Shown here one piece after another: positions 1 to 59,380 of a stretch of DNA of 64,000 nucleotides; position 1 is the stretch's first letter, and every line of letters begins with the position of its first letter. Below the pieces are notes generated by a model, which was not told the origin of the DNA, did no database searches, and worked only from the letters and a program-made list of their open reading frames with translations. The translations under genes and the position numbers were made by a program. Location: assembly GCA_964247055.1 (NCBI GenBank), contig OZ176053.1, positions 1 to 64,000 on the forward strand. The letters are read 5' to 3'. Source of the DNA: Paragordius varius (lineage: Eukaryota > Animalia > Nematomorpha).

Positions 1-3000
1 CCTAACCCTAACCCTAACCCTAACCCTAACCCTAACCCTAACCCTAACCCTAACCCTAACCCTAACCTAACCCTAACCCTAACCCTAACCCTAACCCTAA
101 CCTAACCCTAACCCTAACCCTAACCCTAACCCTAACCCTAACCCTAACCCTAACCTAACCCTAACCCTAACCCTAACCCTAACCCTAACCTACCTAACCC
201 TAACCCTAACCCTAACCCTAACCCTAACCCTAACCCTAACCCTAACCCTAACCCTAACCCTAACCCTAACCCTAACCCTAACCCTAACCCTAACCCTTAA
301 CCGAGTGAATAACCTAACCCTAACCCTAACCCTAACCCTAACCCTAACCCTAACCCTAACCCTAACCCTAACCCTAACCCTAACCCTAACCCTAACCCTA
401 ACCCTAACCCTAACCCTAACCCTAACCCTAACCCTAACCCTAACCCTAACCCTAACCCTAACCCTAACCCTAACCCTAACCCTAACCCTAACCCTAACCC
501 TAACCCTAACCCTAACCCTAACCCTAACCCTAACCCTAACCCTAACCCTAACCCTAACCCTAACCCTAACCCTAACCCTAACCCTAACCCTAACCCTAAC
601 CCTAACCCTAACCCTAACCCTAACCCTAACCCTAACCCTAACCCTAACCCTAACCCTAACCCTAACCCTAACCCTAACCCTAACCCTAACCCTAACCCTA
701 ACCCTAACCCTAACCCTAACCCTAACCCTAACCCTAACCCTAACCCTAACCCTAACCCTAACCCTAACCCTAACCCTAACCCTAACCCTAACCCTAACCC
801 TAACCCTAACCCTAACCCTAACCCTAACCCTAACCCTAACCCTAACCCTAACCCTAACCCTAACCCTAACCCTAACCCTAACCCTAACCCTAACCCTAAC
901 CCTAACCCTAACCCTAACCCTAACCCTAACCCTAACCCTAACCCTAACCCTAACCCTAACCCTAACCCTAACCCTAACCCTAACCCTAACCCTAACCCTA
1001 ACCCTAACCCTAACCCTAACCCTAACCCTAACCCTAACCCTAACCCTAACCCTAACCCTAACCCTAACCCTAACCCTAACCCTAACCCTAACCCTAACCC
1101 TAACCCTAACCCTAACCCTAACCCTAACCCTAACCCTAACCCTAACCCTAACCCTAACCCTAACCCTAACCCTAACCCTAACCCTAACCCTAACCCTAAC
1201 CCTAACCCTAACCCTAACCCTAACCCTAACCCTAACCCTAACCCTAACCCTAACCCTAACCCTAACCCTAACCCTAACCCTAACCCTAACCCTAACCCTA
1301 ACCCTAACCCTAACCCTAACCCTAACCCTAACCCTAACCCTAACCCTAACCCTAACCCTAACCCTAACCCTAACCCTAACCCTAACCCTAACCCTAACCC
1401 TAACCCTAACCCTAACCCTAACCCTAACCCTAACCCTAACCCTAACCCTAACCCTAACCCTAACCCTAACCCTAACCCTAACCCTAACCCTAACCCTAAC
1501 CCTAACCCTAACCCTAACCCTAACCCTAACCCTAACCCTAACCCTAACCCTAACCCTAACCCTAACCCTAACCCTAACCCTAACCCTAACCCTAACCCTA
1601 ACCCTAACCCTAACCCTAACCCTAACCCTAACCCTAACCCTAACCCTAACCCTAACCCTAACCCTAACCCTAACCCTAACCCTAACCCTAACCCTAACCC
1701 TAACCCTAACCCTAACCCTAACCCTAACCCTAACCCTAACCCTAACCCTAACCCTAACCCTAACCCTAACCCTAACCCTAACCCTAACCCTAACCCTAAC
1801 CCTAACCCTAACCCTAACCCTAACCCTAACCCTAACCCTAACCCTAACCCTAACCCTAACCCTAACCCTAACCCTAACCCTAACCCTAACCCTAACCCTA
1901 ACCCTAACCCTAACCCTAACCCTAACCCTAACCCTAACCCTAACCCTAACCCTAACCCTAACCCTAACCCTAACCCTAACCCTAACCCTAACCCTAACCC
2001 TAACCCTAACCCTAACCCTAACCCTAACCCTAACCCTAACCCTAACCCTAACCCTAACCCTAACCCTAACCCTAACCCTAACCCTAACCCTAACCCTAAC
2101 CCTAACCCTAACCCTAACCCTAACCCTAACCCTAACCCTAACCCTAACCCTAACCCTAACCCTAACCCTAACCCTAACCCTAACCCTAACCCTAACCCTA
2201 ACCCTAACCCTAACCCTAACCCTAACCCTAACCCTAACCCTAACCCTAACCCTAACCCTAACCCTAACCCTAACCCTAACCCTAACCCTAACCCTAACCC
2301 TAACCCTAACCCTAACCCTAACCCTAACCCTAACCCTAACCCTAACCCTAACCCTAACCCTAACCCTAACCCTAACCCTAACCCTAACCCTAACCCTAAC
2401 CCTAACCCTAACCCTAACCCTAACCCTAACCCTAACCCTAACCCTAACCCTAACCCTAACCCTAACCCTAACCCTAACCCTAACCCTAACCCTAACCCTA
2501 ACCCTAACCCTAACCCTAACCCTAACCCTAACCCTAACCCTAACCCTAACCCTAACCCTAACCCTAACCCTAACCCTAACCCTAACCCTAACCCTAACCC
2601 TAACCCTAACCCTAACCCTAACCCTAACCCTAACCCTAACCCTAACCCTAACCCTAACCCTAACCCTAACCCTAACCCTAACCCTAACCCTAACCCTAAC
2701 CCTAACCCTAACCCTAACCCTAACCCTAACCCTAACCCTAACCCTAACCCTAACCCTAACCCTAACCCTAACCCTAACCCTAACCCTAACCCTAACCCTA
2801 ACCCTAACCCTAACCCTAACCCTAACCCTAACCCTAACCCTAACCCTAACCCTAACCCTAACCCTAACCCTAACCCTAACCCTAACCCTAACCCTAACCC
2901 TAACCCTAACCCTAACCCTAACCCTAACCCTAACCCTAACCCTAACCCTAACCCTAACCCTAACCCTAACCCTAACCCTAACCCTAACCCTAACCCTAAC

Positions 3001-3161
3001 CCTAACCCTAACCCTAACCCTAACCCTAACCCTAACCCTAACCCTAACCCTAACCCTAACCCTAACCCTAACCCTAACCCTAACCCTAACCCTAACCCTA
3101 ACCCTAACCTTAACCCTAACCTTAACCCTAACCTTAACCCTAACCCTAACCCTAACCCTAA
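1..3161. repeat. Telomere, (CCCTAA)n = (TTAGGG)n on the minus strand; left chromosome end
   Basis: About 525 hexamer copies. The tract is perfect from ~312 to ~3100. CCTAA-type indel variants occur in 1-200, a non-telomeric insert at ~297-314, and CCTTAA variants at the proximal edge (3107-3135). There is an abrupt junction to AT-rich unique DNA at ~3161. Confidence 0.99.
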
Positions 3162-5498: not shown

Positions 5499-5816
5499 CA
5501 CTTGGATACATTCAGATCAGTTCTTAGATTTAAATTTGGGTCGGTAAATACCCCACAAAATCAATATCATAAATGTAATTTAAATAACAAAATAGCTTCA
5601 ATTTTACCCTTAAAATGAAGACGATATGGCGTCGAAGTAGTTTGACATGGAATTTTTTTTTCAAAAAATTTTATTTATATATTTTGGCATATTTATATAA
5701 TTTTTATTAGGATAAAAGCATAAATTTAAATTGGGACCATTTCCTTCAGTAGTTTTTTAAAATTCTAACTCAAATTTAGTCTGGGGTATTTAGATATCCC
5801 AAATTGAATCGAAGTG
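5499..5816. mobile_element. Non-autonomous TIR element ending ...CCCAAATTGAATCGAAGTG-TTA(A/G); TTAA-type ends
   Basis: About 250 bp is clearly homologous to the copy at 62282-62832 (ATGGCGTCGAAGTAGTTTGA...TTTAGTCTGG...GAATCGAAGTGTTA). Confidence 0.6.
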
Positions 5817-7263
5817 TTAGATGTGTATGATAGTCTATTTTTTAATATGGTGCGGTTACCATATAGCTGTATACCATGAGAATCATGATACATTTTGTCA
5901 GAATATAATATTTACGATTTAAATTCACTCTCGAGCAATTAAAATATACTCTTGAACTTTTCAAGAAAAATAAATTATATGTTTTCCGGCTAATATAACT
6001 TATCATTATTATAAATATTCTTATGGCATAGTTTATTTTCAGTATTATATTAATTTTAAACAAAATTTCATTATTTTAATAATATAGCTCTAAAAACAGA
6101 AAATATGTCTTCTGTCCGCTGAATTTAAATTTCATCTGCTCTGAAAACGGAAAGAAACATTAAACTAAAATGCATATAAATTATCAGATTTTTTTATCTA
6201 TCAGAATAGATTTGGTATGATACCCGATAAAAACCATGCCCAGTATTTTTCTATTTTATCGTTAGTAATCATTAAAGATACTGCAAGTATTGAAAATATT
6301 AGCGAGTTAAATTTTACAAAAATATCATATCTGTAAATTCATTTGAAAATTATTGTTATTGCTCAATGCTTCTATATTCTTGCTATGTCAATAATAAATC
6401 ATAAAATATCATACATTTCATTTTTATAGAATGTAAGTTACTAGGTATCGCTTTGTTAACCAAAACTTATGTTTATATATTTATAACATTTTATGATAAC
6501 AAAATTAGTCATAAGATAAGTCACACTGATATACTTTATCTTGTATTTACATAAATAATAATTCTTTGATCACAAAAATTATATATAATATCTTATCTTA
6601 ATATATAATTCTTTTTATAACTATTTTTTATGCCTGCTTTTTTATATTTTTAAATTGAATTTTACAAACACTACATATATTCACCATTCTATTTTTACCA
6701 CCATTTATTTTTCATAATCGCTCATTTATTTTAGCACTTATTCAAATCGACTATCATTATTTGGATTTGAATATACTCACTTTAATTTATTTTTTCGCTT
6801 GGATTTCTTTAATACCTTGTTAATTGTTAATTATTTTTATGTAATCTTCGGTTTTATTATAGTCATATCATTTTTAATCGCTATTTTTGCTTAATTTTTC
6901 TTTTGTTTTTATTTTAAAATTAAATTTTTTATAATATGAAACAATTGTTAGTAATTTTCTTCTCTACGAATAACTTTGGGTACCATTTTTGTACTTTACT
7001 AAATATTTATATTCGTTACAGTATGTGGTAATTTCTAAATATTTCTGATCACATATGTTATATTCCACAGGTCCATAATGTTATTTTTATTTTTGGAGAT
7101 TTGATCCTTCCTTCATGTGTACATAGCAGTGGCCCGATATCGAAATACACTTTAAACATTTTATAACTTGTTTTTTCAAATCATCTAATACTTTATAAAA
7201 AAAATTTTATACTTTTTTTTCAAAAGTTTAAAAATTGTTTCTAAATTGATTTTTATGATTGTG

Positions 7264-7415
7264 TTTGGGCCACTCCTGGAGGTACTGCAATACCAGGTTG
7301 ACCCGATGGGGAGGGATAGGCAAGCCCAGAGCGCCTCCCCAAAATCTCCAAAAATAAATTTAATATCATGGACCTCTTTAGAGGTCGTATCAGATATTAA
7401 GCTGATAAGAACAGA
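7264..7415 (-). ncRNA. U2: U2 snRNA, 3' part (nt ~40 to end), separated from its 5' part by a retrotransposon
   Basis: Minus strand reads TCTGTTCTTATCAGCTTAATATCTGATACGACCTCTAAAGAGGTC...ATTTTTGG (Sm site)...CCTGGTATTGCAGTACCTCCAGG (stem-loop IV). This matches the metazoan U2 sequence. Confidence 0.97.
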
Positions 7416-8284
7416 TTTTAATTTATTTACATAATATATATATAATAATAAAAAAAAGATGCATGTGTTTAATTATAATATATTTTTATATTAGATTGAT
7501 CAATGATGGCAATGAAGTGGTGATTTACAAATTATTTAAAATTTATAATAAATATTGTAATAAAAATATTTTACGTGTAAAAAAAAATAACCTCCAGTGG
7601 AGGAAAAAAAAAATAGGAGAGAAAAACCCCGGACGGGGTTAGAAAAAAACTCTCCCAAAGGAATCTTTGTTGGATCCTGTTGGTTGGTTTGAATCTAGCA
7701 CAATTCCGTTTTCGTTCGACGTCTGTTGTATTGGTGGGGGATCAACGAAGGTAGCAGCGTCTTGTCCTGGCGTCATTTGAGATGTTGATTGGAAGTGATC
7801 ATCGTTGGTTGAGTTGAAGGTTGTTTCGGCAGTTGTTAGTGAATTGACTTGATTAGGTTTGGTTGAGGCGTTCGTTACACTGTCGGGAGGTTCGACTCCA
7901 TTTTTAAACTCGTACCAGAGCCGTGATGAGTGTCGTATTGTAGAACTTATCATCAGGCTTCTGAGCCGAGAAATAGAGGAACTAGTAATATTCTTCAAAC
8001 CTTCGTCGTTTTTGGGGAACCATGATCCTAGACTTCCGACAACCAGTGGGAGTATCTTGACTTCGTTTGAGTTATTAGACAATAAGGGAATCAAAGGGGT
8101 ATATTTTTCTACCTTATTGTCCCAAGCCGAAGCCAAGGCCGCCCACCGATCATCGAAAGGACAGGTCACGTCGATGATGTATATAATGCCGCGAAATTTA
8201 ATTACTAAGTCAGGTTTCAGGGGGAGGGAGGCTGGGTAGGAATTCTCGGACATGATTTCAGCGCCACAAGATAAATGTGTTTTT
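7416..8284 (-). mobile_element. 5'-truncated Utopia-type (U2-targeting, NeSL/R2 group) non-LTR retrotransposon, 869 bp
   Basis: Inserted exactly between U2 GTAGTA and TCTGTTCTT. It encodes a restriction-like endonuclease. No TSD or poly(A) is visible. The 3' UTR has two GC hairpins and ends in an AT-rich tail. Confidence 0.93.
7639..8253 (-). CDS. C-terminal restriction-like (PD-D/ExK) endonuclease domain of the Utopia element plus a low-complexity tail; uninterrupted 204-aa ORF
   Basis: Motifs KPDLVIK-x7-DVTCPFD-x-KVEKY and PLVVGSLGSW are typical of R2/NeSL/Utopia endonucleases. The frame stays open back to the U2 junction (KTHLSCGAEIM). Confidence 0.88.
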   Translation of the reverse strand: MSENSYPASLPLKPDLVIKFRGIIYIIDVTCPFDDRWAALASAWDNKVEKYTPLIPLLSNNSNEVKILPLVVGSLGSWFPKNDEGLKNITSSSISRLRSLMISSTIRHSSRLWYEFKNGVEPPDSVTNASTKPNQVNSLTTAETTFNSTNDDHFQSTSQMTPGQDAATFVDPPPIQQTSNENGIVLDSNQPTGSNKDSFGRVFF

Positions 8285-8323
8285 TACTACACTTTGATCT
8301 TAGCCAAGAGGCCGAGAAGCGAT
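8285..8323 (-). ncRNA. U2: U2 snRNA, 5' part (nt 1-39, stem I and branch-point recognition sequence)
   Basis: Minus strand reads ATCGCTTCTCGGCCTCTTGGCTAAGATCAAAGTGTAGTA. Confidence 0.97.
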
Positions 8324-8364
8324 AACCACATACAAATTTGACTCTTTCAATATATATTTATTTA

Positions 8365-8385
8365 TTCCGTTAATTTTGGGCATTA
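8365..8385 (-). promoter_or_regulatory. Putative snRNA proximal sequence element (PSE) of the U2 gene
   Basis: TAATGCCCAAAATTAACGG starts at about -62 relative to U2 +1. Position and 5' half resemble the insect PSEA (TAATTCCCAA..., about -61 to -41, recalled). Confidence 0.5.
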
Positions 8386-9526
8386 CCAATTGAAAAATTT
8401 TTGATTTGCAACTCCTATGGTTGAAACAAGCATTTTTTTAGCTATCGAATGATACCAAATACTCTATATGTTGTTTGAAATATCAATTATTTTGTAATTT
8501 TGGCAATTATTATCATATTTTTATAAATATATGCTTTCTATCAACATTTTATCCATTTGTTTGTTAATTTGCTCATCTTCGTTTTGTATGTATTATCTTT
8601 CCCCTATGTTATGTTATTCGAATACCAATATCCATATTTTTATTATGATATAATACAGAATTTAATAAATATTAGTACTGAATTTTATATAGTTGTCTTT
8701 TGGAGGTAAATATAGCAGATTTTAAAGAGAATATTTAGATAATAAAATGGAATTTAATAAGAAAAAATTAATTATTTTATAATTATTCATAATTTGAAAT
8801 AAGTGGAAAATTTCAAGTTATATAAATCAAAATATTTATTGTAACGATTTTAAGAATTTGTAACAGATGACATAACGAAATAATTTTATTATCAAAAAAG
8901 AAATAAACAATAAAAGTTGAAAAAATCTATAAAAGGAAGTCAAAAAAGGTATACAAAATATAATTATTGCTAATGAGAAAGAAAAAAGGAGGCATAAAAA
9001 TTTGAATCGTAATCATGTTATGGAGAAAATGAAGTTTTTTTTTTTTATTCGCGTATTCAAATTAAGAATTGTTTTATAATGCTTTTCAAGTGGAACTTCC
9101 TTCTTGCATAAAAGTTTTTGAACGGAATGTAAAACAGATTTTACGATATCGAAAAATAAGGCGCAGTGATAATTGTTTATTTATAAGATGTCTTTATACA
9201 TCTTGGTAGCGAAATAACATAAATTATGCATAAGGTATAAATAATAAATTTAACTTTGATCGATGTAAATAAAACTAATACAGTTATGGCATAAAATTAT
9301 ATTGGTTTACATTTTTTTATAATTTCTATTCTAATTGTCTGATAATGTATATATATATTTATGTTCTTATTAAATTATAATGCACATGCGCTCAAGATTA
9401 TAACGGTTCCTTTTATGTTATTTTCCTTTGTCTAATGTATCAATTTATATGTATTGATTTGTCTCACATTTAATTTCATTTTATATTTTCTTTGTTGTAA
9501 TTTATTTTAAATTTTTTCTATTAACA

Positions 9527-9560
9527 ACTCCTGATGATGCCATTGGGCGAAAATTTGAGT
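9527..9560 (+). ncRNA. Minimal type I hammerhead ribozyme motif (Penelope-type)
   Basis: ACTC-CTGATGA-T-GCC(ATTG)GGC-GAAA-ATTT-GAGT: core CUGANGA and GAAA, stem II GCC/GGC, stem I ACTC/GAGT, and a palindromic AATT in place of stem III. It is preceded by a T-rich tract and followed by AATAAA. Confidence 0.7.
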
Positions 9561-9639
9561 ATATAATAAATTTATTTTTTATTTTCTTCCATTATTCACG
9601 ACGTTAACACGAATTTTATAAGAAATGATATTTTTAAAA

Positions 9640-11257
9640 AAACAAAGGGATATTATGGATATGCTTATACATTTTTATTATTTTATGGACTAATAATGAT
9701 TTATGCCATACGCTACTGTAGTTTTAAAATCATAAAAAATTCTAACACATGCAAATCTGGTCGGGATTCATTTAAAGAAAAAAATAGGGATATTGGTAAA
9801 AATTAAATGTATACATAAAAGAAATTTTATAATTATGTGCAAATGTGAGATGAACGTTACAGAAAAATATGAAAGAAAGGACGGTATATTTTGTTTATTC
9901 TTTCCTGTTTTTTTAACATGAGATGAAAATTATAGTTTGATGGATACATATGTGTTTTCTTTTGAGTATTCAGAATTACATAAATTTTTTTAACATTTCA
10001 TCAAAAAGTTAACAATTTCCATGTGTGAATGTCTTAATTATATTTAAGTATGTTGATGGGTAAGTTGTGTATACATATACAGTAGCGTATGGGAGTAAAA
10101 CAATATTAGTCCATAGAATAATAAAAAAATGTTTTTTTAAAAAAAACAAGGGGATATTATAAATATGTGTATTTACATCTAGGATTATTTTTAAAAAAAA
10201 AAACATTTTTTTATTCTTTTATGGACTAATATTGTTTTACTCCATACGCTACTGTAAATGCGAAATAGAATTCATATAGTATATAAAAAAAAGAAGCAAG
10301 GAATCAAATATAGAATTAAAATTTTAGGATTGTTAACAATCAATATAGTCAAGCAACTTTAACGTTATTATCAAGTCTAACAAATTATGTGTAGGAAACA
10401 GCATATTGACAGTTATATGGGATATAATTTATTAAAGTGTACTATTTTAAGCTAGAAAAAAATAATAATCCTACTTCTCTCATGCAAATATTTATCATTT
10501 ATAATTTAAACAAGTTAAAATCCCATACAATAATGATATAGGTGTAATATAAATTTCAAATAAATAATTTAAAATCATGTTATTTATTACTTAAATTAAG
10601 TATATTTCAAAGGTATTCGCTAAGCTAATGTCCAATATCGTGCAAAGTTGCTTAAACCAATCGTGTACCGTCTAAAAATTATCACAGTAAAACCTTGATA
10701 ATGTAAATTAATTTAATATCATTTGTTGTTTTTTCGAATTTCCAATCATAATGTGAATGTGGCACCCAAGGCGAGTTTTTGCGGAACACGGAGATATTTT
10801 CATAAAAGAGAAGTGATTTAAAATTTAAAGCAGATGTAAATTACAGTAGCGTATGGCATAAAACATTAGTCCATAATAGAATAAAAAAGGTACCCATAAT
10901 ATACCCTTGTTTTATAACATTTTTTTATTCTTTTATGGACTAACATTGTTTTATGCCATATGCTACTGTATTTATATATTTTGAGTAAAATTTATTTTAA
11001 TTTTTTACTTCATTTTATAGAATACATTTTTAAAATTGTCCATTTACATATCTGACCAATATAAATTACAACATACAGTAGCGTATGCAGTAAAAGATTG
11101 TTAGTGCTAAATAATCTTAATGAACACAAAACAGGGGGATATTATGGATATGTTTATAAATAGGACTGAATGATAATTAATATATGAAAATTGTCCCCCT
11201 GTTTTGTGTTGATTAAGATTATTTTGCACTAACAATCTTTTACTGCATACGCTACTG
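9640..11257. mobile_element. Cluster of Tc1/mariner-type MITEs (TA|CAGTAGCGTATG...CATACGCTACTG|TA)
   Basis: Complete copies at 10080-10254, 10844-10968 and 11076-11257, each flanked by TA with 40-60 bp TIRs. A right-end-only copy ends at 9718. Further copies at 42551-42616 and 43650-43823. Confidence 0.85.
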
Positions 11258-28606: not shown

Positions 28607-31600
28607 ATGCGTTTAAAATTATTTTACTATATGTCTCAAAAATTTGACATTACTGGTGTGAAGAATATCTGCACTTTAAAAATAATAGATAAAAATTTAG
28701 GTATATCTAAAATTACTGTAGGAATTTATGCTATTGAGTTAAACAGACCAACTGTAAAAAATGCCTTAAACGTAGAAATGCTCGATTTAGTACTAATTTA
28801 ATCCATTTTATCTCAAATAAAGCTAATAACTTTTAATATGTAATTTTATTAAGTTTGAAAATATATTTGATATAATATAGCTGTCGAATCACGTTGAAAC
28901 CGCTTCAAAAGAAACTAATTGTCATGCAATCATCTTACGTAGCCTTGTTCCCGGTGTTTTTTGCTCAGGTCTTTTTTCCATTTATTAAAAATATTTAATT
29001 TTTAAGAAAAAAGAACCCATTAAATATTGGCTCCACTTTTTCGACCTAGATCTATCCGAGCTCTGTAACGTGTTTCGTCCATAGTCTTTTTTTAAGTTTT
29101 TCCTGATTTTATTTGGATCAGTAAATCAAGAACAAAAAATAATTTAAATGATAAATTTTGTCAAAATTTGTTTTGACTATTTTAATGATAGCTGTGGGCG
29201 AGTATTAACCTTATTTTTTATTTGGATTTGTTTTATTTGAATATCAAAATGACAATTATTTTTTGGATTATTTGTAGAGAGGAATTTTTTTTAAGTCCAA
29301 GGTGCTGGCTGGCCTTGTTGGAAACACATGTTGAAAGTTTTTTACGATTTTTTTTTAAATGTTCCATTTTCATTTGGGAATTTTATCCTAAATATGAGTG
29401 GAACATCACATCTAATTAGATGTTCATTTAGTTTTATTGTTAGAAAGCTAATTCTTAAACGATGTTTTTGTCCGAATAGAAACCAGAATGAGGATATTCG
29501 TCAAAAGCCATCATTGAAAATTCAAATTTCAAATTTACTTTACAATGTAATCACACGTTAGGTTATATCTATAACTAATATTATGCTTTTCTTAAAATAT
29601 TGATTTTTTCCAACTTCTATATTGGTTGTTATTTGTAGCTATCAAATATTTCGATTACTTTTTAGGGGCAGATCTTAAAGAAAGAACATCTATGCCAATA
29701 GAACGGGTCGGAGATCATGTTCAAAAAATGCGCAATCTTTTCCAACGTTTCTATCGACTTCCTCAATTAACCATAGCGGCTTTAGATGGTTCAGCTTTTG
29801 GTGGAGGTTTAGAATTGGCTCTATCAGCTGATATGAGAATAACGAGTATTTAATATACTTTTTATTTAAATTTATTTATTGTGAAGGAACGTTAAATAAA
29901 TAGGTATTCGCTTTTACAGCTGTAACCACCATCTTTCTTTAATCGTTTATTTACTTTTCTCCAGATTCTCTGGTTGCCGGTTAGTAAGGGCATACACGGC
30001 GTAAAAAACGGTTGCTCCATAATTTACTTCAGTATTTTATCGCTAATTCACTTTTCTTTCTCGCTTTTTGCTTGTTCTTATCATATCATTACATTATAAC
30101 GAAACATAATATGTGTTCGAATCCCACAATCCATACTAATCATATCATTCGTCTGGCCACTTGGAATATAACATCTTTAACCAGAAGGAGTCAGGAAATA
30201 GCAGCTTTGCTTTCTCCAAGAACATCAAAAAATGTTGCGTCCAAGAAACTCGCTGGAAGAACACTGGTTCCAAAAACATTCTAGATTATAAATTATTCTG
30301 GTCTGGATCTAATGGCCGTTCATCAGGTGTCGGAGTTTATGTCAAAAATTCAATTTTATCCAATATCATATCCATCGATTACTGTTCTGAAAGATTATTA
30401 GTATTAAAAATTCAAATCAACAAAAAAATCTTTCATATTTTATCAGTATACGCCCCACAAATCAATTGTGATTCAAACTGTAAGGATTTATTCTGGTTGG
30501 CTTTATATGAAAAAGTCACTGCTATTCCACACACTGATTTCATATTTATTGGGGGTGACCTAAACTCTCACTTTGGTAAAGAATCTTTACATTCAGTACA
30601 TGGAGGTTTTGGAATGGATGATTTAAATGAAAATGGTAAAATATTATTAGATTTCGCAAGTAATAATAATTTATCCATCATTAACACCTTTTTTAAAAAA
30701 AATGATAATAACTTGTTAACCTATATATCCGGCACAAATCGCTCGATGATTGACATAATTATGTCAAGAAAAGAAAACAAATCCCATTTTAAAAATATTA
30801 GATCTATCCCCGCTCTAGAACTACAGCACAAACTCATTATTGCTGAATTATATAAATCTACATCAAAGGCAATCACCCATTGGACAAAATAAATCTAAAT
30901 TTAGATATAAAAAATTAGTCGATAATAATATCAATAATAGATTGAAACTCGACACGGAAAGTTCCCTTAAATTAAAAACAACCTCTCCGGAACACCTCTG
31001 GAATTCCTTAAAATATAGCTGCATTGAATCACTAGAGAAGAATGTTGGGAGAATGAAATCTAATAATAAAAAAGCATTTAAATGGTGGTGGCAAATATCC
31101 CTGATAGATATAATTAAGAAAAAGAAATCTGCATTCCAAAAATGGAAAAAAGAAAAAAGTGCTGACAGCAAAATAAATTACCTCCAAACAAAGAAAGATT
31201 GCCGTAAAGCGATCAGAGCATCGATGAGAAAAATGGGTGAAGAAAAAGGGAAGGAACTAGAAAATGCCATATCTTCTCAATCTGTATATAGATGGGTAAA
31301 ATATGATAATAATATAAGGGCCGAAACAAATGCAATTAGATTACCCAATAATACCATAACCCACGACGCCCAAGTTATAAAAGCCACATGGTATAACCAC
31401 TATTTTAATATTTTTAACAAACCTATAATACCTATGGAAATCACGAACCCTCACCCAACATATTCTTCATTCCAACCATTTACTAATGATGAAATAGAAT
31501 TTTGTTTAAACAATTTAAAAAGTAATAAATGCCCCGGTTTATCAGAAATCACAAATGATGTATTCAAAGCCCTAGATCATAATTTATTTTTGGACTATTT

Positions 31601-34600
31601 CAAAAATCTTGCGAACAACATAGCATTAAATAATACCATACCCTCTGATTGGCTGAAAAGCTACACAATTCCAATTTATAAGGGCAAAGGAGATCGTTTT
31701 AACGTTTCCAACTTCCGTCCCATACGCATCTTAGAACATGGTTTTAAAATCTTTGAAAATCTGATAGCCAACAGAATCCGTCGACACTGCACCATAGATT
31801 CTATGCAATTTGGATTTTCAAAAAACAAGGGTACTATAGACGCAATATTTATAATCCGCCAATTACAAAATGCTCACCTGAGAAATCTTCCTCTCCACTA
31901 TGCGTTTGTAGACTTGGAACAGGCTTTCGACTCAGTCCCGCAACACCTGATTGCTTGGTCGCTCAGAAGGCAAGGTATAGAGGAAAATATGATACAAATA
32001 ATAGAAGCACTATATAAGAACACCTCAACTGTAATCCGTACAAGCGTTGGCGATACGAACCCCATCCCACTTAAAAACGGCCTACACCAAGGTTCTATAT
32101 TAAGCCCCCTTTTATTTATTCTAATTATGGAGGAGATCACAAAAGACATACGAAAAGGCTTACCATTTGAACTTCTGTACGCTGATGACTTAATATTATG
32201 CGCCACATCTGCTCCGGAATTAATGGAAAAGTTAAATTTATGGAAGGATACCCTTAGTAAATTCGGTTTGAAGGTAAATACATCAAAGACTAAACTAATG
32301 TGCGATGAAAACAGGACAATAAAATGGCCCTGCTCCGTGTGCTCATTAAATGTAAAGTCAAACTCAATAAAATGTAACAAATGTTTAAAGTGGGTACATA
32401 AAAAATGCTCCACTTTAAAAAGTTTATATGATAATAAAAACTTTATCTGCCCCTCGTGCACTACAACAAATACATTAACCATAGAATCCCCCGAACCCTC
32501 CACTTCATTCGAAATTGTCGACAAATTTACATATCTAGGCGATACTTTGGATGCTGGTGGTGGTATAGAATCGGCCTTATCGCATAGAATCAAAGCCGCC
32601 TGGAAAAAATATCATAGTCTGCGCACAATAGTAAACAATAAGTACGTTTTACTCAGCTCAAAGGCAAAAATTTTTATGACGGCTATACGTCCTGCTATAC
32701 TATATGGTACGGAAACATGGCCTATGACTAAATCAAATCTACTATTACTGCAAAAGGGTGAGCAAAAGATCCTAACGCCATTCTTTTCGCACATAACCCT
32801 AACATATACAATTTCCAAGCCAAATTTTGCCCCTATCAAACTCTAAAAATTAAACCAATTAATACAGCTATCCGGGAATACCGTTTGCGTTGGGCTGGTC
32901 ACATCTACAGAGCGCAAGACACAAACTGGATCAAGCTCATACAGTCTTATTCAACCAATAATAAAAACAAAAAAGGAAGACCGTATAAAACCTGGCAATC
33001 CACCATTCAAGAAGACCTAGATTCTCTTAGTATCGATATCGAACAAGCTCAAGATAGAAACAAATGGAAAACTCTAACACGCTTACCTCCTTTGAAAGGA
33101 GAAAATAGCGTATAAAGGTGATATATATACATATATATATATTATATATTATTATATATGTATATTTAAGTAAGAAAACAACTATTTTTATCGTTTACTT
33201 ATAGTTTTTTCGAAAAAATTCTCTATCATATATTTTAACATAAATCATAAGGGTTGTCCTTAATATCCTAGTTTTAGCATTTTCAATTTTTATTGTATAG
33301 AAACTTATACGTATCAATATATATCACTTTAGCTGACACTTCTAAGCTTGGGTTAGTTGAAACGAAATTAGGCATCATTCCTGGAGCTGGTATAGCTTTG
33401 AATATATGTTAACGATGAATTTGATAATTAAATTTATATAAAAATTTTAATAACCTTTTTATTATTTGGGTTCATTTTGTTCAAATTTTACTAAATTGCG
33501 CTTAATTTGGAGAATTAAAATAAATAATAAAACTTTAAACAAATCGAAGAATTTCAGGTGCGAATTATCATAATTTGTTAGCAATATGGAAAAAATATTT
33601 TAAAAATGCAGATAGAAGTATCTCATTGATTGGGTAAAATATTTTACATTTCATCTTGAATTTATTGAGAGGGGCGCAACAATTTTTATTTCAATTTGTT
33701 AGGGCCTCAACAAGAGCACTCCTTTAGATTAATATTGTAAGACGGAACGCATAAATCTTAATATATTTTTTATGTTTAAAGAGCTTTTCCTTTAAGAAAA
33801 ACTACCCAATTTTTAAGAATTAATTTCCTTTTTAATAATTGAAGGTGGAACCCAAAGATTAGCAAGACTGATTGGTACTCTTAAAGCTAAAGAACTCATT
33901 TTCTCCGGTTCTATTATTGATGGACAATTAGCCGAACAACTTGGTTTAGTTAATCAATCCATCAAAATTGACCACACAACTAAGACCGGTTTTTAATTCA
34001 AACATAAACTCTTTTTCAACCAATTATTATTAACCAAAATGCTTGTTTTAGAGGCGGTTAATAATTCAATTAACGATTCAAGGAAAATGTTTATTTTAAA
34101 AGTTACTTTTTTCCAATTTTTTACCTGAATCTCTATTAATCGAATTCCTTTGTTTTGGTATATGCAGTAAAAATAAATTTTATATGGGCAAAACGAAAAA
34201 ACTTAAAGATAAATTTCAAAAGACAACCATACTTTTTTAATCTAGAATTTTTAATTATAACTCATTGTTTCAAATTGGAAATTATGAAACAGAGATGTAT
34301 ATGGAAACATAAGCAATTAAATATTTAACGATTTCGACTAAATAATTATAAAGGAAAATTTTAGATTTAAAAAGTATGGTTGTCTTTTGGGAAAAAATAT
34401 TTATCTTTTTTTTACGTTTTGCTTGATTATCCATAATTGGACTTTCTTGACATTTTTTGGAATATGTAAAACAAATGGGAACCATATTTTTAGGTCATAA
34501 ATATTACTTTGAACCGGTGAAAAATAGTAAATATGTCTATATCCGATTAGATTACAAATTTTTAATCATTCTTATAATTATAGCTCATTTATTATAATAG

Positions 34601-46770: not shown

Positions 46771-49700
46771 TTAAAACATTTTTATCATTTTTGAAGCATT
46801 TCCAGCAAAAGAAATGTTTTTCAGCTTCTCACATTCTATTACGGTAGCATTAATATTACACATTTTGAAAGTTGTGCAAATTGTAAACCCATAATGATTA
46901 CCATTGCGGTTTAGAGCAACCAATCGATTACAAGCATCATTAAAGTATTCATTATCTAGTAATATAAAACATATAAAGTAAAGCGTGAATATCAAAAATA
47001 TTAAATATATATTATAAGCCTTGTTTGCTCAAAAAATAACAAAAAGGCTTGACTCATAATCCGCATACTAAATCTTTTAAAAAAATTGGTTACGCAAATT
47101 TTGTTGCTTCAAATATTTAAAAAATGTATATCGGAGAGTAAGAAAAATCTAAACGAAGGCATCGTACATCATCGTGACTTAAAATCAGAAACCCTTCTCT
47201 GAGGAAGTAATTTTAACAAGACACTTAATTTAAACGAGTTGCCGTAAAAATTAATAGTTAAGTGGAAAGAAAGGAATTAGATCGGAAAACACACAGATAT
47301 ATGTTTGAGGTGTAAGAAATTGACATTAAATAAAAACATAATTGAATAAGCAATTCTATAAATCAAATATTAACATTGATTAATGATAACATAGAAAACA
47401 TAACAATGAAACTATTTGGAGGCATGTTAAATTCTGAACATAGTGGCGTACCGATAGGGGGCCAAGGGGGGTGGATTATGTCCCGGGCGCAGTTATTTAG
47501 GGGCGCCTAAATAATTTTTTTAAATTAAATTTAAAATATGCAAAAACAACTTTCAAGTAAGATTTTTGAGCAACTTCTTGATAATCCCAAAAATAATATA
47601 AAGATCATAAAAATGAGATCAAGATCAAACATAATGCAAACAACTTTCATTATCCCTTCCACGTGTATAAACTTATTTTTTCGCTTAAAAAACGTTCCTT
47701 TATCAGGCCCATATTGTCAATTCTTTTATTGACTTTAATTAAATTATTTTAACTTCTCGCTCTGTTCAAAACCTTATCTCCTATTCTTATAATTTATAAT
47801 TGCATTTTTATTTTATAAATATTCAATTTCATAACACAATTTTATTTATTTAAATCCCCAAGATCATTCCAATACTAACAAGGTAGTTTTTTATTATAAA
47901 TATAGCCTTTATTTCATAATTACATTTATTTTCATCATATATCAACTAAGCTCACCGGTTTCGAAAAGGAAGCAAAAAATCCAGGAATAAAACAAATAAA
48001 ATGCGAATGAGTAAGAAATCTTTTTTAACAAAAATATCTGACCCTAACATTGAAAAAGTGTATGCGACACAAAGTTAACGGACCTTGATAATAACTTTAA
48101 TACATCTGAAACCTTAGTTATTATTCCAATATATAGAGATGAGAAAACTACAAATAATTTAATTCCAAGCGCTATACCTATAGAGTTTAAATGTCCTTTT
48201 CTAATGATATTCCTCCTGTAATATCTAATCAGCGTCATACAGAAATGATTATTCGTGGATTTCTAGTGTATAACGAAATAAGTGCCATCTCTTTGAAACA
48301 AAAAATCATCGTTTAATGCCTCAATCTTGGTTTTTTCGACGTGTCGGTCAAAAGAGGGATTTGAAGTTGAAAGTTCTTGGTTTTTATATTCACCAAAGAA
48401 CAGATTTGAGTGTTGTATTGATGCCTACTTGATCGATGTTATTACATCGAATATTGGCCTGCATAAAATTTCTAATCAACCAAAATCTCCCTTTTCGAGG
48501 ACATGTTGAGAGTTTAATGTATCTAAGACTCAGCTCCGAAAAATCTCTTATCTTTACTATACCTTTTAGCTCGGTTTGGCCCAATAATGGTAGAACACAT
48601 GAGAACATTGAATCTCATAACTTATCCTATGTTTCATCTAAAATCCAAAACGAGTTTATACATTAAGAGTTAAAGCTAAATTGATCAATGACACAAAGAA
48701 GTTATGGACGTATATTTGATTCAACCCCAAATATAGCGCACCGAAAAACATTTCCAAGTTGCCAGATAAGTTTAAGTGATTATGAGAAAAAGAAAGTTGT
48801 CATAAAGGAATTCTTTTTGGGTTTTTTTTCAGTTATACAACAAAAATGTCAATTGGTAGGTAATTTTAGAAAATTTAAATATGATAATATTCAGTTATCA
48901 AATTGTAGAAATAATTTATCGTCACACCTCTTTAAATAAACATACCTCTGAGTTGGAAGTCCAATTTTACAGTTCTGTCGCTTGAAAGTTTTTTCCAGCC
49001 TGTTATGTTCTTAATTCCTGCACGGTAGGCCCCGAAGGTATGTAATGCTGGTAAAACTGAAATCATAGAAATGTTTAATGAATCAATACGATTGTGGTCC
49101 AAAAAAATTAGTTCAATTGATTGATTATATGCAGCGCGTGTGAAATCAACGGATGTAATATTACTATGATGTATACTAAGGGATTTTAAATGCATCCATT
49201 TCTCAAATGGTTCCAAGTCTGTCAACCCCGAAACATAGCCTAAACTCAAAACTTCAAAATAATTTTCTTTTTTAAAAAAGTCGGGAGTGACCCTACAATA
49301 CCTAAGGATCAAAGATGTTAGAAGTTTAGGGAAAGATTGTGCGGAATTAATAAAGGATGTAACGCGAAGCGATCTGCCTATTATGGTTAAGGAGCGAACG
49401 TTAGGGTATTTTCGTAATATATCAGAAAAATCATAATGATCTTCCAACACGTGCAAAATCACTTCTTTCGCGTTTAAATTTTTTGGAAAAAAGTTTGTGT
49501 ATGATTTCACCTCAAGTCTTTCCAATGAAGGCAAATTAACCTGCAAGGCACTATCAAATGTTGCGTTTAGAGTTAAACTCTCTATGCTTGAGTGATTAAC
49601 ATGACCTACTAAATTTACTTGGCCAATAATCAAAGTTACCTGTTGCAACATTGGAAACAGATGCAAGATGGTCCAATTAAAATCTTTTTCGAAACCAATA

Positions 49701-51533
49701 ATTCTAATATATACCGATTTAACCATTAAGTGTGTAGACAATATCTTTAACAATTCATATATATGTTCAATATTTGTGTCATAATCCTTAACACTAATTT
49801 CCGTAAAATTTTTTGGGAGCCAGACTGAAAAGGCTGATTTATAGATACAATATTCTATTCTTGGATTGGCCTCGGATTTAAGCACTCTCATCATATCATT
49901 GATTGATAATATATCCGAACAATTGTAATCCTTTGTCCCGACTATATATTTGCAATGAATATCGTAAGTAATTTTACATTCGTTGATGCGATCATTATTA
50001 TCCAGTAGCCCAATTAACTTTAATACATGGGTTTTATTGGCAAAATCATAGATTAAACCATTTCTGTATTCACAAGTACCGATAAAATTGTTGATTTTAC
50101 TAAAAATTTTCATCATATCCGAATCACATTTCAACGTGTTCCCAATAACTATCAATTATCAAAAATACATTGATTAAAACGAATTATTGAATGGGAAATA
50201 ACGTAAATAAATAAATAATAATATTACCTATTGAAACATTTTTTGATTTCATTGAACTCAGCGGCTTAAGAATTTTCTTTAAATAAGGTGAGCTAATGTC
50301 TATGATTTGTAATTTTGGAAATTTGTTCAATTCTTCAATGTCAAATGTCTCAATAAAATTGTTTGAAATGTTCAAATATTCCACATTCATGAAATAAGAT
50401 TGTCCTTTAAGTAAAGCATAATTTTTCAAAGAAGGGAATATGTGTGTAATGTCATTAAAAGCCAGATTTAAGTGTCTAAGATTCGAAAGTTGTTGCCAAA
50501 CATCCATAGTAATAGCAGAGATTTGATTATTTTCCAAGTTTAAAGATTGCAAACTAGTCAAGTTTATATGTAACAAATGACTAGCATTTATTTGACCGTT
50601 CAATTTATTAAATCCCAAATTCAGACTTTGTAACTCAGAACAATATTGGTATTTTTCGTTCATTTTCTCCAATCCAATCTGATTATAACTTAGGTTAAGA
50701 GCTTTTAGGCTGGGATCACACACATCAGTCCAACTACTTAATTCATTACCAGATAAATCCAATGTTTCTATGTTATGCGTTGCATTGAATCCCCCAATGA
50801 CGACGGTTTTTAGGTTGTTTCCAATTTTCAAATATTTTAAAGAAGATGGAACATTTTGTAAATTAATTTTTTCCAAATTTTTAGATAATAAAGTAAGATT
50901 AATCAGTTTCGTTAAATTCTCTAATTCGAAATTCCAAAAATCGGTTAATGATTGCGACGAAAAAGTATGACCATTCACCTCCAAACTTTTTAGTGATGAC
51001 CCCAAATATATGAATAATTTTTCCAATTCAGATTCAGATATTGATTTGTCTACTTGATTAATTTCCAGGCGGTTTAATTTGGGTAAAGGCATCTCCTCAG
51101 TCGTAATAACACTTTTGATTTGTACATTATAAAACTTTAATGCTTTTATCCATCTTAATTTTATATCGTTCAAGTTTAGCACTTCAAAATCGCAATTTAT
51201 AAAATTCAAATTAAAAAATTGCCTATCTGAAGTTCGAAAATCAAAGATATCCTTGTAAAACCCAGACATTGATCCCGAACCACTGTGGTAGATTTGATCT
51301 TCATCATCGACAGAATACTGCAAATCTAATAATTTCGTTAATTCCTCCAATTTATCTTTTAACGTATTCAATTGTTTGTCCCCCATCTGGCTGCATTTTA
51401 TTTCGTTTAATACACATTTGCATGGTTTGGTTATATTGAGGCACCAATCTCGAATAACTTTGTTCTCAGTGAATTCCTTGTGAGCATTAATAAAGGGATA
51501 AACGAAGGAAAAAAGTAGTATAGGTAAAAACAT
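46771..51533 (-). CDS. Secreted leucine-rich-repeat protein (two LRR blocks separated by an LRR-CT-like cap); last exon tentative
   Basis: The two long ORFs join through a 79-nt GT-AG intron (50227-50149) giving NVSIVIGNTLKCD. Exon 2 ends at a GTATGT donor (48946), and a phase-compatible Cys-rich exon lies at 46955-46771. Signal MFLPILLFSFVYPFINA, N-cap C..PCKC....KC, LxxLxLxxNxI repeats. No TM or TIR domain found. Confidence 0.8.
47158..47202 (+). pseudogene. Isolated protein-kinase catalytic-loop-like fragment
   Basis: GIVHHRDLKSETLL* resembles IVHRDLKxENLL, but no flanking kinase subdomains are recognisable. Confidence 0.3.
47441..48930 (+). mobile_element. hAT (ZMYM1-like/TTF zinc finger) transposon remnant in the LRR gene intron
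   Basis: AGTGGCGTACC...GGGCGC hAT-like end at 47441. Fragments SWFLYSP, NQNLPFRGH, YVSSKIQNEFI and IFDSTPNIAH...EFFLGF lie in different frames. The right end is missing. Confidence 0.75.
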
Positions 51534-55824: not shown

Positions 55825-57097
55825 ATTTATTAAAAAAAATAAGCTAAAATGCGTACAAATATAAAAAATATATATTTTAATTTTCGACTTTAATAGTAAA
55901 GTCTTTATCGAAAAAATATTAAATGAATTGTAACGTAATAAGATGCCTTATATAGTGTGATATAGGTAATTGATGAAAAAAACCAGTAACATTAAAAAGT
56001 ATTGTATACTGGAAAAAATCAATTACCTTTACAACATTATAAAAGACATAAATATGATAAGTGTTATGGATGTGAGATAATTATAGTGGATTGATTAAAG
56101 TGATATTGTTATTCTATTAATATATAATTCCAAATAGGAGACAATATTAGACCATCGTCCCTATTAAGTGATGCATTGTTTTTCTTAATTTCTATTGACT
56201 CGCGTATGAGACGCTTGTTGTAGTTTTCTATATTTGTAATCACCTTAGTGTCCGCAATGAAGTGTCCTTCCTTGCAAACGTGTTCAGATAAACCTGAGGT
56301 GGGTTTATTAAGACGAATGTATTGGGAGTGTTCACGTAAACGGACATCTATACTTCTACCACTTTCACCTATATAGACGCTTTCACATGAACATGTGGCC
56401 TTGTATATACCAGGTAGTCTGTTCTTGGGTATCGGATCTTTGTATTTGATTAAGTTGATCAGTTTTGTCATTGGCTTATACACTGTACGGATATTAAATT
56501 TATTGAGAATATTACCGATTTTTGTGGTAACATTATTAATGAAAGGTAAGGTGGCTGTGGATACAAAATTGTTATCTTTTTTGTTTGAGGTTTTGTGAAG
56601 AATTTTATCAAAAAGTTGTTTGGAGTAGCCATTTCGTTGGAACGTATGTTTGAGATTTGATAATTCTGTGGTTAGAGATGCTGAGTCACATAGGTCATAG
56701 GCTCTATGGATGAGTGTTTTAATAACTGAGTGTTTTTGAGCTGGGTGGTGGTGTGAGTGAGCGTTTAGGTAGAGGTTAGTGTGGGTTAGTTTGCGATAGA
56801 TCGTGTGATTGAGATGGCCATCGGGTGTTTTGGTAATGTATGTATCTAAAAAACTTATAGAGGTATTATTGTATTCCATGGTAAAATTAATATTTTTATT
56901 CATTTTGTTTATATGATCAAAAAAATTACGTAACCTGTCTTCTCCGTGGGGCCATATAACAAATATGTCATCAACATAACGTAGCCACATGGTAGGGAGA
57001 AATTCGGAACTGTTAAATATCTGTTTTTCCAGGTTTTCCATATAAATATCTGCAAGGATTGGTGATATGCTTAGTCCCATTGGTGTACCATTGTTTT
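55825..57097 (-). mobile_element. 5'-truncated Penelope-like element (RT C-terminal half + GIY-YIG), left arm of a palindrome
   Basis: ORF 56109-57101: GTPMG.SISP.LA.IYME, WLRYVDDIF, SFLD, YRK.THTNLYL, GIYKATCSCESVYIGESGR. Confidence 0.95.
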
Positions 57098-58265
57098 CCA
57101 TGTGGCTACGTTATGTTGATGACATATTTGTTATATGGCCCCACGGAGAAGACAGGTTACGTAATTTTTTTGATCATATAAACAAAATGAATAAAAATAT
57201 TAATTTTACCATGGAATACAATAATACCTCTATAAGTTTTTTAGATACATACATTACCAAAACACCCGATGGCCATCTCAATCACACGATCTATCGCAAA
57301 CCAACCCACACTAACCTCTACCTAAACGCTCACTCACACCACCGCCCAGCTCAAAAACACTCAGTTATTAAAACACTCATCCATAGAGCCTATGACCTAT
57401 GTGACTCAGCATCTCTAACCACAGAATTATCAAATCTCAAACATACGTTCCAACGAAATGGCTACTCCAAACAACTTTTTGATAAAATTCTTCACAAAAC
57501 CTCAAACAAAAAAGATAACAATTTTGTATCCACAGCCACCTTACCTTTCATTAATAATGTTACCACAAAAATCGGTAATATTCTCAATAAATTTAATATC
57601 CGTACAGTGTATAAGCCAATGACAAAACTGATCAACTTAATCAAATACAAAGATCCGATACCCAAGAACAGACTACCTGGTATATACAAGGCCACATGTT
57701 CATGTGAAAGCGTCTATATAGGTGAAAGTGGTAGAAGTATAGATGTCCGTTTACGTGAACACTCCCAATACATTCGTCTTAATAAACCCACCTCAGGTTT
57801 ATCTGAACACGTTTGCAAGGAAGGACACTTCATTGCGGACACTAAGGTGATTACAAATATAGAAAACTACAACAAGCGTCTCATACGCGAGTCAATAGAA
57901 ATTAAGAAAAACAATGCATCACTTAATAGGGACGATGGTCTAATATTGTCTCCTATTTGGAATTATATATTAATAGAATAACAATATCACTTTAATCAAT
58001 CCACTATAATTATCTCACATCCATAACACTTATCATATTTATGTCTTTTATAATGTTGTAAAGGTAATTGATTTTTTCCAGTATACAATACTTTTTAATG
58101 TTACTGGTTTTTTTCATCAATTACCTATATCACACTATATAAGGCATCTTATTACGTTACAATTCATTTAATATTTTTTCGATAAAGACTTTACTATTAA
58201 AGTCGAAAATTAAAATATATATTTTTTATATTTGTACGCATTTTAGCTTATTTTTTTTAATAAAT
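57098..58265 (+). mobile_element. Second, shorter Penelope-like copy in inverted orientation, right arm of the palindrome
   Basis: Reverse complement of 55825-56992, with only two amino-acid differences over ~290 codons (L/P, H/R). End symmetry holds: 55825+58265 = 56992+57098. Confidence 0.95.
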
Positions 58266-59380
58266 CTTTTCAAAATTATTATAATTTTTAAAAAAGAGTT
58301 TTAATTGATGTTGCTTTAAAAAAATTAAGGTTGGAGAATGAAAATTCAACCATCATTTATTGTAGGTATCGGAGAGATTTCGTTTCTTAGATCGCACAGT
58401 ACGATATAAATATATTTTCCACTTGTTTTTTTAAAACGATTTTAATAGAAAAAACATTCAATGGGGTTAAATAGTGGTAAACTGGTATATTCATATGATT
58501 TTATTTTAAATTTCCGAAGAAACGCATTCAGTTCAATACTATTTTTTTAGAAACGCTATATAATCGATATTCATTCCCTATTTTCCTTTATATACACAAT
58601 TGATTACATCCTTAGCTTTTGTCCGTTACAATGTTTGTTTTAATGATTGTGATATTCTATTAAATGAATTTTAATAAATATTTTTTTAATATATAAAAAT
58701 TTAATATTTACGTGGTTAATTTGTTATGTTTAAATAAGAATTTTATCGGAAAAAGAATTAATATAAAAATTTGGCAAAAAATTAACAAAAATATTATTAT
58801 TCCCCTTTAACAATATTTTAAGATTTTTTACCAAAGATTTCCGACGCCCTTCCCCCACGCTTCTTTTACTTTTTTATAGAATATGATATGGTTAATACCA
58901 TAGTCTTGTTTTTACATTTTTACCAAATATTTATACCCATTAACACTTTTTTTCATGCATGAAACCATGTGATTAAAAGCGGCAAGAAACTCAAGGAGAG
59001 TATTATTATTATTTATATTATTATATACTATAAATATATTTAAAAATATGTTTTCCTTTCAGTAATTATTAATCTTTTTCTTTGTTTTGTGGAGTTTTTT
59101 TTTATTTGTATGCTAAATGTAATTTAAAGAGTAATATAATTCATAAGTCATAAGTCATCAAAAATCATTGTTATACATATTATCTCTTTTTTTTCTCAAC
59201 TACTTGGTGCCTAATTATTTTATTTTTACTAGCCTAGCCATAATTCCCTTATATTTTCTTTTATGATTGCTAGACAGAGTGAAATATCAATATTTATAAT
59301 TTATATCCAAATTAACAACATTTATAAAGATTACCCTTTAATTTTATTTATTTTTCTAGATATTTATTTTTTTTTATAAA

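Follow-up and report, generated by a model that had tools for sequence, protein, structure and literature searches.

In the window, i.e. the whole stretch of 64,000 nucleotides analysed here from the start of Paragordius varius contig OZ176053.1 (referred to as C4 where contigs of the assembly have to be told apart), a U2 small nuclear RNA (snRNA) gene close to the telomere is split by an insert of 869 bp. With a probability of roughly 90%, this insert is a dead-on-arrival, 5′-truncated copy of a U2-specific retrotransposon of the Utopia kind, a group characterized by a restriction-like endonuclease (RLE), and was made by target-primed reverse transcription. The features of the locus are as follows:

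1-3160, no strand: telomeric repeat (CCCTAA)n (direct reading; GC 0.50 and GC skew -1.0 over 1-3000)
5746-7259, minus strand: subtelomeric block downstream of U2 (blastn against the C1, C6 and C8 loci)
7260-7415, minus strand: 3′ part of the U2 snRNA gene, from T40 (TCTGTTCTTATCAG...) to the 3′ end (Rfam RF00004)
7416-8284, minus strand: whole insert, 869 bp, 5′-truncated copy of the Utopia-like family IV (homology to the copy on C3)
7416-7638, minus strand: 3′ UTR of the element, 223 nt, with two short GC-rich hairpins after the stop, then AT-rich (direct reading)
7639-8283, minus strand: open remnant of the element's single ORF, 214 codons plus stop (7641-7639) (translation)
8285-8323, minus strand: 5′ part of the U2 snRNA gene, nt 1-39, ending in the branch-point-pairing box GTAGTA (direct reading)
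8324-8906, minus strand: flank upstream of U2 (promoter region), with 92% identity to the corresponding flank of the intact C1 gene (blastn)

A search against Rfam returns the gene in two pieces, namely a U2 match on the minus strand at 7260-7460 (RF00004; 121 bits, E 5e-24), whose 5′ part aligns poorly and which is well aligned only from model position ~38 onward, and a second, weak and separate match at 8252-8323. By direct reading, these pieces correspond to three minus-strand segments (U2 5′ part, insert and U2 3′ part) that are joined exactly at GTAGTA/TCTGTTC. The 3′ part (7415-7260) begins TCTGTTCTT and includes an exact 28-mer of the U2 3′ half at 7388-7415, and an exact 21-mer of the 5′ part is present at 8285-8305. 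The A at 7416 is ambiguous, as it can be assigned to the element or to A39 of U2. Both parts are identical to the canonical intact U2 genes C1:15223126-15223320 and C3:526786-526980, which score 177.7 bits each and are the best two in the assembly. Identity or near-identity to these two genes extends over about 30 nt of flank on each side of the split copy, with the proximal 30 nt of the upstream flank conserved in the window and in the intact genes on C1 and C3. In 110.6 Mb, the 21-mer at the end of the U2 5′ half has three exact occurrences, namely the two intact genes and the split copy. From the U2 3′ end to the last telomere repeat the distance is 4.1 kb. An earlier note made from the letters of the window had described the split U2 gene, the 869-bp insert, the coordinates, the junction and a telomere distance of ~4 kb, all of which direct reading and Rfam bear out. 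The split copy cannot make U2 snRNA.

The surrounding genome is very AT-rich, with ~25% GC outside the telomere, and the telomeres are of the TTAGGG type. In the window, the telomere tract is broken by a short non-telomeric stretch at about 296-312 (..CCCTTAACCGAGTGAATAACC..). Further inside, other retroelement ORFs combining apurinic endonuclease (APE) and reverse transcriptase (RT) domains are located at 30161-32846 and 56109-62199, the first of which also has a PHD finger, and 48932-51533 holds two ORFs with leucine-rich repeats.

Direct evidence on the insertion event comes from the end of C1, where a paralogous block carries the same U2 gene uninterrupted and hence represents the empty site. 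This locus aligns by blastn to window positions 5746-7416 (94%) and 8285-8906 (92%), and the two alignments meet from either side at one base, A39 of U2. The insertion is therefore exact: 869 bp were added, and target bases were neither duplicated nor lost. A seamless join lacking a target-site duplication, as already proposed in the earlier note, is thus borne out by the empty-site paralogue.

The coding part of the insert corresponds to a C-terminal RLE domain whose PD..D..K..Y residues become apparent upon alignment with relatives. The nuclease columns P782, D783, D796, K815 and Y819 are invariant across 18 relatives, and all of them are kept in the window remnant. The remnant begins just after the CCHC knuckle codons of the parent frame and is devoid of both the RT and the knuckle itself. 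When searched in isolation, 204 aa of it gave only a chance BRE match in Pfam (E 0.019), and the matches to the R2 C-terminus in a PDB search were non-significant (E about 0.2). Since the remnant thus has no significant domain match of its own, its identity rests on the alignment with full-length relatives. The insert cannot move on its own because it carries no reverse transcriptase.

The 3′ UTR of the insert ends ...AATAAATTAAAA, a tail motif that is common to family III, another of the four U2-specific families in this genome (families I to IV, see below). In families III and IV, two short hairpins directly follow the stop codon (window 7590-7638, minus strand). The second hairpin keeps its ACT loop in both families, with stems that differ (CCTCC/GGAGG versus CTCCTC/GAGGAG). 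The tails of all four families end AATAAATT(A/C)(A/T)A. The post-stop hairpins together with the common tail may constitute a candidate 3′ RNA element that is recognised by the reverse transcriptase.

The closest relative of the insert is located on C3. From C3:474875 onward, both sequences are 99% identical, and within the element they differ by one substitution and three small indels, i.e. an in-frame 3-nt indel and two homopolymer length changes. The remnant is 99% identical to residues ~760-972 of the ORF at C3:475100-478015. This frame is open over 972 aa and encodes RT, CCHC knuckle and RLE; it matches Pfam RVT_1 with E 1e-37, and its best PDB matches are R2 proteins (E 4e-58). Position 8284 is the exact start of the homology, which continues across the U2 3′ half. 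Upstream of this point, U2 nt 1-39 follow in the window, whereas RT-coding sequence follows in the C3 copy, and the flanks outside the U2 unit are unrelated between the two loci. The copies in the window and on C3 are two independent insertions from one recent source. The C3 copy is itself 5′-truncated, as its similarity to the nearest full-length family starts at residue 508 of the latter, and no U2 5′ half lies upstream of it.

In a protein search of the whole assembly, no further family IV copy with >91% identity was retrieved. The source element is absent from the assembly or was missed, and no complete copy was found. Family IV proteins share 46% identity with family III, 40% with family II and 33% with family I. 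Relative to this 46% for the nearest local family, identity to anything in the searched protein database is at most 39%. Family IV is a new family of the known Utopia kind, in a comparison made without named Repbase references. At the DNA level, the insert has 16 relatives, all of which, bar the window copy, lie in C3:248-514 kb. A recognisable U2 3′ half is abutted by 12 of the 16, and the others abut decayed look-alikes. Copies at unrelated sites, which the earlier note had named as an observation that would speak against its reading, were thus not encountered among the DNA-level relatives of the insert.

The insert could have arisen as follows, if R2 and Utopia are taken as the model. The element protein would have nicked the antisense strand of the subtelomeric U2 gene between nt 39 and 40, and the freed 3′ end would have primed copying of the element RNA from its ...AATAAATTAAAA tail. 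Reverse transcription would then have ceased once 869 nt had been copied, at a point immediately downstream of the codons for the CCHC knuckle, before the cDNA end was presumably joined to the upstream target end at a 2-nt TA microhomology. Indeed, U2 (..GTAGTA) and the parent sequence (..ATACTA) share TA at the 5′ joint. A 5′ truncation with 2-nt microhomology is a usual outcome of target-primed reverse transcription.

Alternatively, no new retrotransposition event may have taken place, and the insert could have reached this U2 gene as DNA, the split U2 genes arrayed on C3 serving as partners in ectopic conversion or recombination. U2 units share ~200 bp as well as short conserved flanks that are able to seed conversion, and every other member of the element lineage resides in C3:248-514 kb. 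However, given that the C3 copy carries RT-coding sequence in the place of U2 nt 1-39, a tract of conversion would need to begin exactly at the canonical insertion base. Moreover, the joint between U2(1-39) and the truncation exists at no other locus, with the 21-mer confined to the intact genes and this site, and the truncation with its 2-nt microhomology fits what target-primed reverse transcription usually leaves behind. Copying at the DNA level is thus improbable, and target-primed reverse transcription remains the favoured origin.

The open frame of the remnant raises the question of whether these 204-214 nuclease codons have been kept as a gene that is expressed from the U2 promoter. The frame is open with its catalytic residues present, an ATG is available at 8253 after the U2 head, and the upstream flank is 92% identical to that of an intact U2 gene. 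Yet, the remnant is one substitution away from its sister copy, and with so little divergence an open frame is to be expected from youth alone. A second locus with the same architecture was not found, nor was there evidence of selection, and snRNA-type transcripts are not normally translated. The chance that the remnant serves as a gene is practically negligible, which leaves it as a dead fragment of a retrotransposon. As for the recent activity that the earlier note had read from the intact ORF remnant, recency is supported by the 99% identity to the C3 copy, whereas the open remnant is not the basis for it, and both copies of the family are 5′-truncated. Judged from sequence, current activity would be evidenced not by family IV but by the open frames of the three other families, which occur in copies that are 98-99% identical.

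These families became apparent in an all-U2 census of the assembly of the kind that the earlier note had suggested. A pattern search for the initial 28 nt of the U2 3′ half with ≤3 mismatches returned 34 places, at each of which the junction was read; one was discarded as a chance match that is not U2. Among the 33 genuine places, an element tail precedes the U2 3′ half at exactly T40 in 28, so that 28 interrupted junctions compare with 5 uninterrupted ones. Of the latter, two are in the canonical genes, two more in genes on C2 that represent a second U2 type, and the fifth is in an odd copy at C4:2.626 Mb. The tails before T40 are AT-rich and end AATAAATT(A/C)(A/T)A or similar. At several loci, full-length insertions of 4.4-5.7 kb separate the U2 halves. 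At least four families use the same U2 base:

Family I: 1279 aa, five copies that are 98-99% alike
Family II: 1173 aa
Family III: 1411 aa
Family IV: the window copy and the C3 copy

Families I-III have open frames of 1173-1411 aa in copies with 98-99% identity. The 5′ joints differ slightly among the insertions (GTGT/, GTAG/ and GTAGTA/), and such slightly variable 5′ joints are as described for Utopia and R2.

The uninterrupted junctions include U2 variants that deserve separate mention. The U2-like gene at C4:2626169-2626361 (153 bits) has the uninterrupted junction GTAGAACTCGTTC in place of GTAGTATCTGTTC, i.e. four changes in six bases, located exactly where the branch-point-pairing box and the Utopia cut site lie. 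This gene may be in decay, or it may be a variant that escapes recognition by the elements. Paralogues of the second U2 type (155 bits) are grouped in a small separate cluster at C2:11950601-11988570, in which two copies are intact and several are split; their stem sequences are different, and their branch-point box is intact. The intact U2 genes of the genome comprise two canonical and two variant ones.

Genome-wide, site specificity is not absolute, as decayed family-I-like copies are present on C1, C7, C10 and C11. A 21-mer composed of the U2 head and the start of family I (..AAAGTGTCGTC) was observed at C10:3549903, C11:223590, C11:384464, C11:394123 and C11:478534, and the 28-nt pattern search detected no U2 3′ half near any of these five sites. 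They resemble off-target copies, and their U2 head suggests, at the level of sequence, transcription from the U2 start site. Additionally, open frames of 1289, 906 and 829 aa that are 43-49% identical to family I were seen at C6:3725585-3729067, C8:180036-182615 and C4:7793977-7796394, respectively. Near these, too, the 28-nt pattern search revealed no U2 3′ half, and they may represent a fifth RLE family with another or looser target.

The properties of the insert and its local relatives closely follow those of Utopia. Utopia elements are RLE-type non-LTR retrotransposons of the NeSL clade that are flanked on their 3′ side by U2 from nt 39 onward (PMC4640811). Their 5′ joints are variable, and arthropod families insert without target-site duplication; the protein features one to three N-terminal zinc fingers, RT and then a zinc finger and RLE (PMC4640811). 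Several families co-occupy U2 genes at low copy number, and split U2 genes outnumber intact ones by 41 to 7 in P. infestans and by 77 to 15 in Nasonia (PMC4640811). In the present genome, the insertion base is the same, with nt 39 of the human numbering corresponding to nt 40 here because this U2 has one extra A. The element lies in the same orientation as U2 and lacks a target-site duplication, as in the arthropod families. The longer C3 copy encodes RT, CCHC and PD..D/ExK nuclease in a single ORF. Intact U2 genes are in the minority compared with split ones, and the niche hosts several families at low copy number. Weak Pfam matches to C2H2 fingers were obtained in families II and III, C..C..H..H patterns are present in families I and III, and the family IV copies are N-terminally truncated. 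In contrast to the described elements, the window copy consists of an 869-bp tail only, and its target U2 is part of a repeated subtelomeric block. The host also seems to lie outside the published host list, which as of 2015 covered arthropods (among them Ixodes scapularis and Acyrthosiphon pisum), two nematodes, echinoderms, reptiles, oomycetes and Acanthamoeba (PMC4640811).

R2 shares the layout of RT, CCHC and RLE with the local elements and provides the best match among solved structures (E 4e-58). It also shares the target-primed mechanism and often leaves 5′-truncated dead copies in a multicopy RNA gene. Yet, R2 targets 28S instead of U2, and the absence of a Myb domain separates Utopia from R2 (PMC13188248). 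No Myb match at E ≤ 0.01 was obtained with Pfam in the complete proteins of families I-III, the N-terminus of family IV being missing from both copies, and a 28S-flanked relative falls far outside the clade of the local elements. An identity as R2 was rejected in view of the U2 target of all copies of the lineage and of the sister families, in which no Myb domain was detected. YURE from Ciona belongs to Utopia relatives that prefer U2-derived satellites. Its homologous protein Q76IM9 was retrieved in our searches; it is placed outside the clade of family IV, and the target here is a real U2 gene. An Rfam search of four long copies (E ≤ 0.5) disclosed no ribozyme or other RNA family besides U2.

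Relatives in other organisms reinforce this picture. A word search with the C3 frame gave 783 matches, the best of which are 36-39% identical and originate from spiders, ticks, aphids and crayfish; further matches come from a Plectus nematode, octocorals, a sponge and Ciona (Q76IM9). Metagenome contigs were scanned with an alignment of 18 proteins, which yielded 80 loci with protein relatives that are 29-35% identical. In at least 25 of these 80, a U2 3′ half starting TCTGTTCTT directly follows the element tail in the same orientation, and Rfam confirms U2 at the flanks. One distant metagenome relative adjoins 28S rRNA according to Rfam. In three metagenome contigs, the elements reside in tandem U2 arrays with U2 both upstream and downstream, and these arrays resemble those described for Phytophthora.

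A maximum likelihood tree was calculated from 34 rows, none of them a named Utopia, NeSL or R2 reference, and 897 columns. The four local families form one clade (100/99); as the tree tool flagged the local proteins as compositionally skewed, this grouping could be inflated. The local clade is nested within a 100/100 clade that also comprises a U2-flanked contig and the tick, spider, aphid and crayfish proteins. The sister of this 100/100 clade (94/92) contains more U2-flanked contigs, Plectus and a scorpion protein; proteins from Ixodes scapularis and Acyrthosiphon pisum lie within the 94/92 grouping. The octocoral, Ciona YURE, sponge and 28S-flanked elements are positioned outside both clades. 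Membership in the Utopia clade is accordingly suggested by surrogates, namely U2-flanked relatives and proteins of published host species.

The shared insertion site leaves room for a different assignment, according to which the insert belongs to the APE-type lineage Keno, whose U2 site is identical, or to some other lineage outside Utopia that has arrived at this site by convergence. The 3′ junction in U2 is identical, since Keno and Utopia have the same 3′ flanking U2 sequence (PMC4640811), and the tree is devoid of named Utopia references. However, Keno encodes an AP endonuclease, whereas the remnant has a C-terminal PD..D..K restriction-like endonuclease, to which the longer copy adds a CCHC motif, with R2 proteins as its best PDB matches. 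An AP endonuclease domain was not found by Pfam in any local family (RT and zinc fingers only), and in the tree the family is surrounded by RLE elements with U2 flanks in other organisms. A Keno-like or convergent origin is therefore very improbable. The assignment of the insert to the Utopia type in the earlier note stands, as site, orientation and lack of a target-site duplication agree with the published description (PMC4640811), the RLE residues are kept and the tree places the family among U2-flanked elements.

With regard to the host, the grouping with arthropod and nematode elements is compatible with an ecdysozoan, albeit not proof of one. The mitochondrial COX1 gene (C44) has six in-frame TGA codons that are read as Trp (invertebrate mitochondrial code), and protein matches to a stop-free COX1 piece of 136 aa are at most 79% identical. 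Directly upstream of COX1, C44 features a long tandem repeat with an open reading frame. No link between Utopia and Nematomorpha was found among the papers searched, and the host phylum is probably new for Utopia.

The occupied U2 gene in the window is one of several in similar surroundings. A repeated block of a few kb with a U2 gene lies near five contig ends, i.e. the end of C1, the start of C4 (window 5746-10077), the start and the end of C6, and the start of C8. Over the part at 5746-7259, identity to the window is 94% at the C1 end, 88% at the C6 end, 80% at the C8 start and 81-96% at the C6 start. Telomere repeats are seen at three of the block-bearing ends (C4 start, C6 start and C8 start), and the U2 genes of the other two blocks are 7.6 kb (C1 end) and 6.6 kb (C6 end) away from the contig end. 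In all five blocks, U2 is oriented toward the chromosome end. Four of these U2 genes are occupied, and each of the four hosts a different Utopia family; only the C1 copy is intact. The occupants are:

C4 start: family IV fragment
C6 start: family I
C6 end: family II
C8 start: family III

As a tentative and rather doubtful explanation, recombination between chromosome ends might keep regenerating empty U2 sites and thereby let at least four families persist in a telomere-linked safe harbour. If true, subtelomeric turnover would provide a safe harbour for a site-specific retrotransposon despite the small number of intact U2 genes.

Taken together, the locus reveals no new mechanism; it is a clear-cut case of an element type already described. 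With it, a host genome and a new family join a site-specific lineage that is known and has a patchy distribution, and the filled and empty sites form an unusually clean pair in which the insertion is exact to the base. The occupation of one block by different families at different chromosome ends and a family IV without a complete copy are added here. For annotation, it should be kept in mind that most U2 matches in this assembly are dead halves and that the few working U2 genes include a subtelomeric one. The ratio of 28 split to 5 unsplit junctions and the presence of at least four families repeat the picture from Phytophthora and Nasonia. The coexistence of these families within one clade supports, as far as can be judged from sequence comparison, a long-term vertical maintenance of such elements in a small multicopy target.
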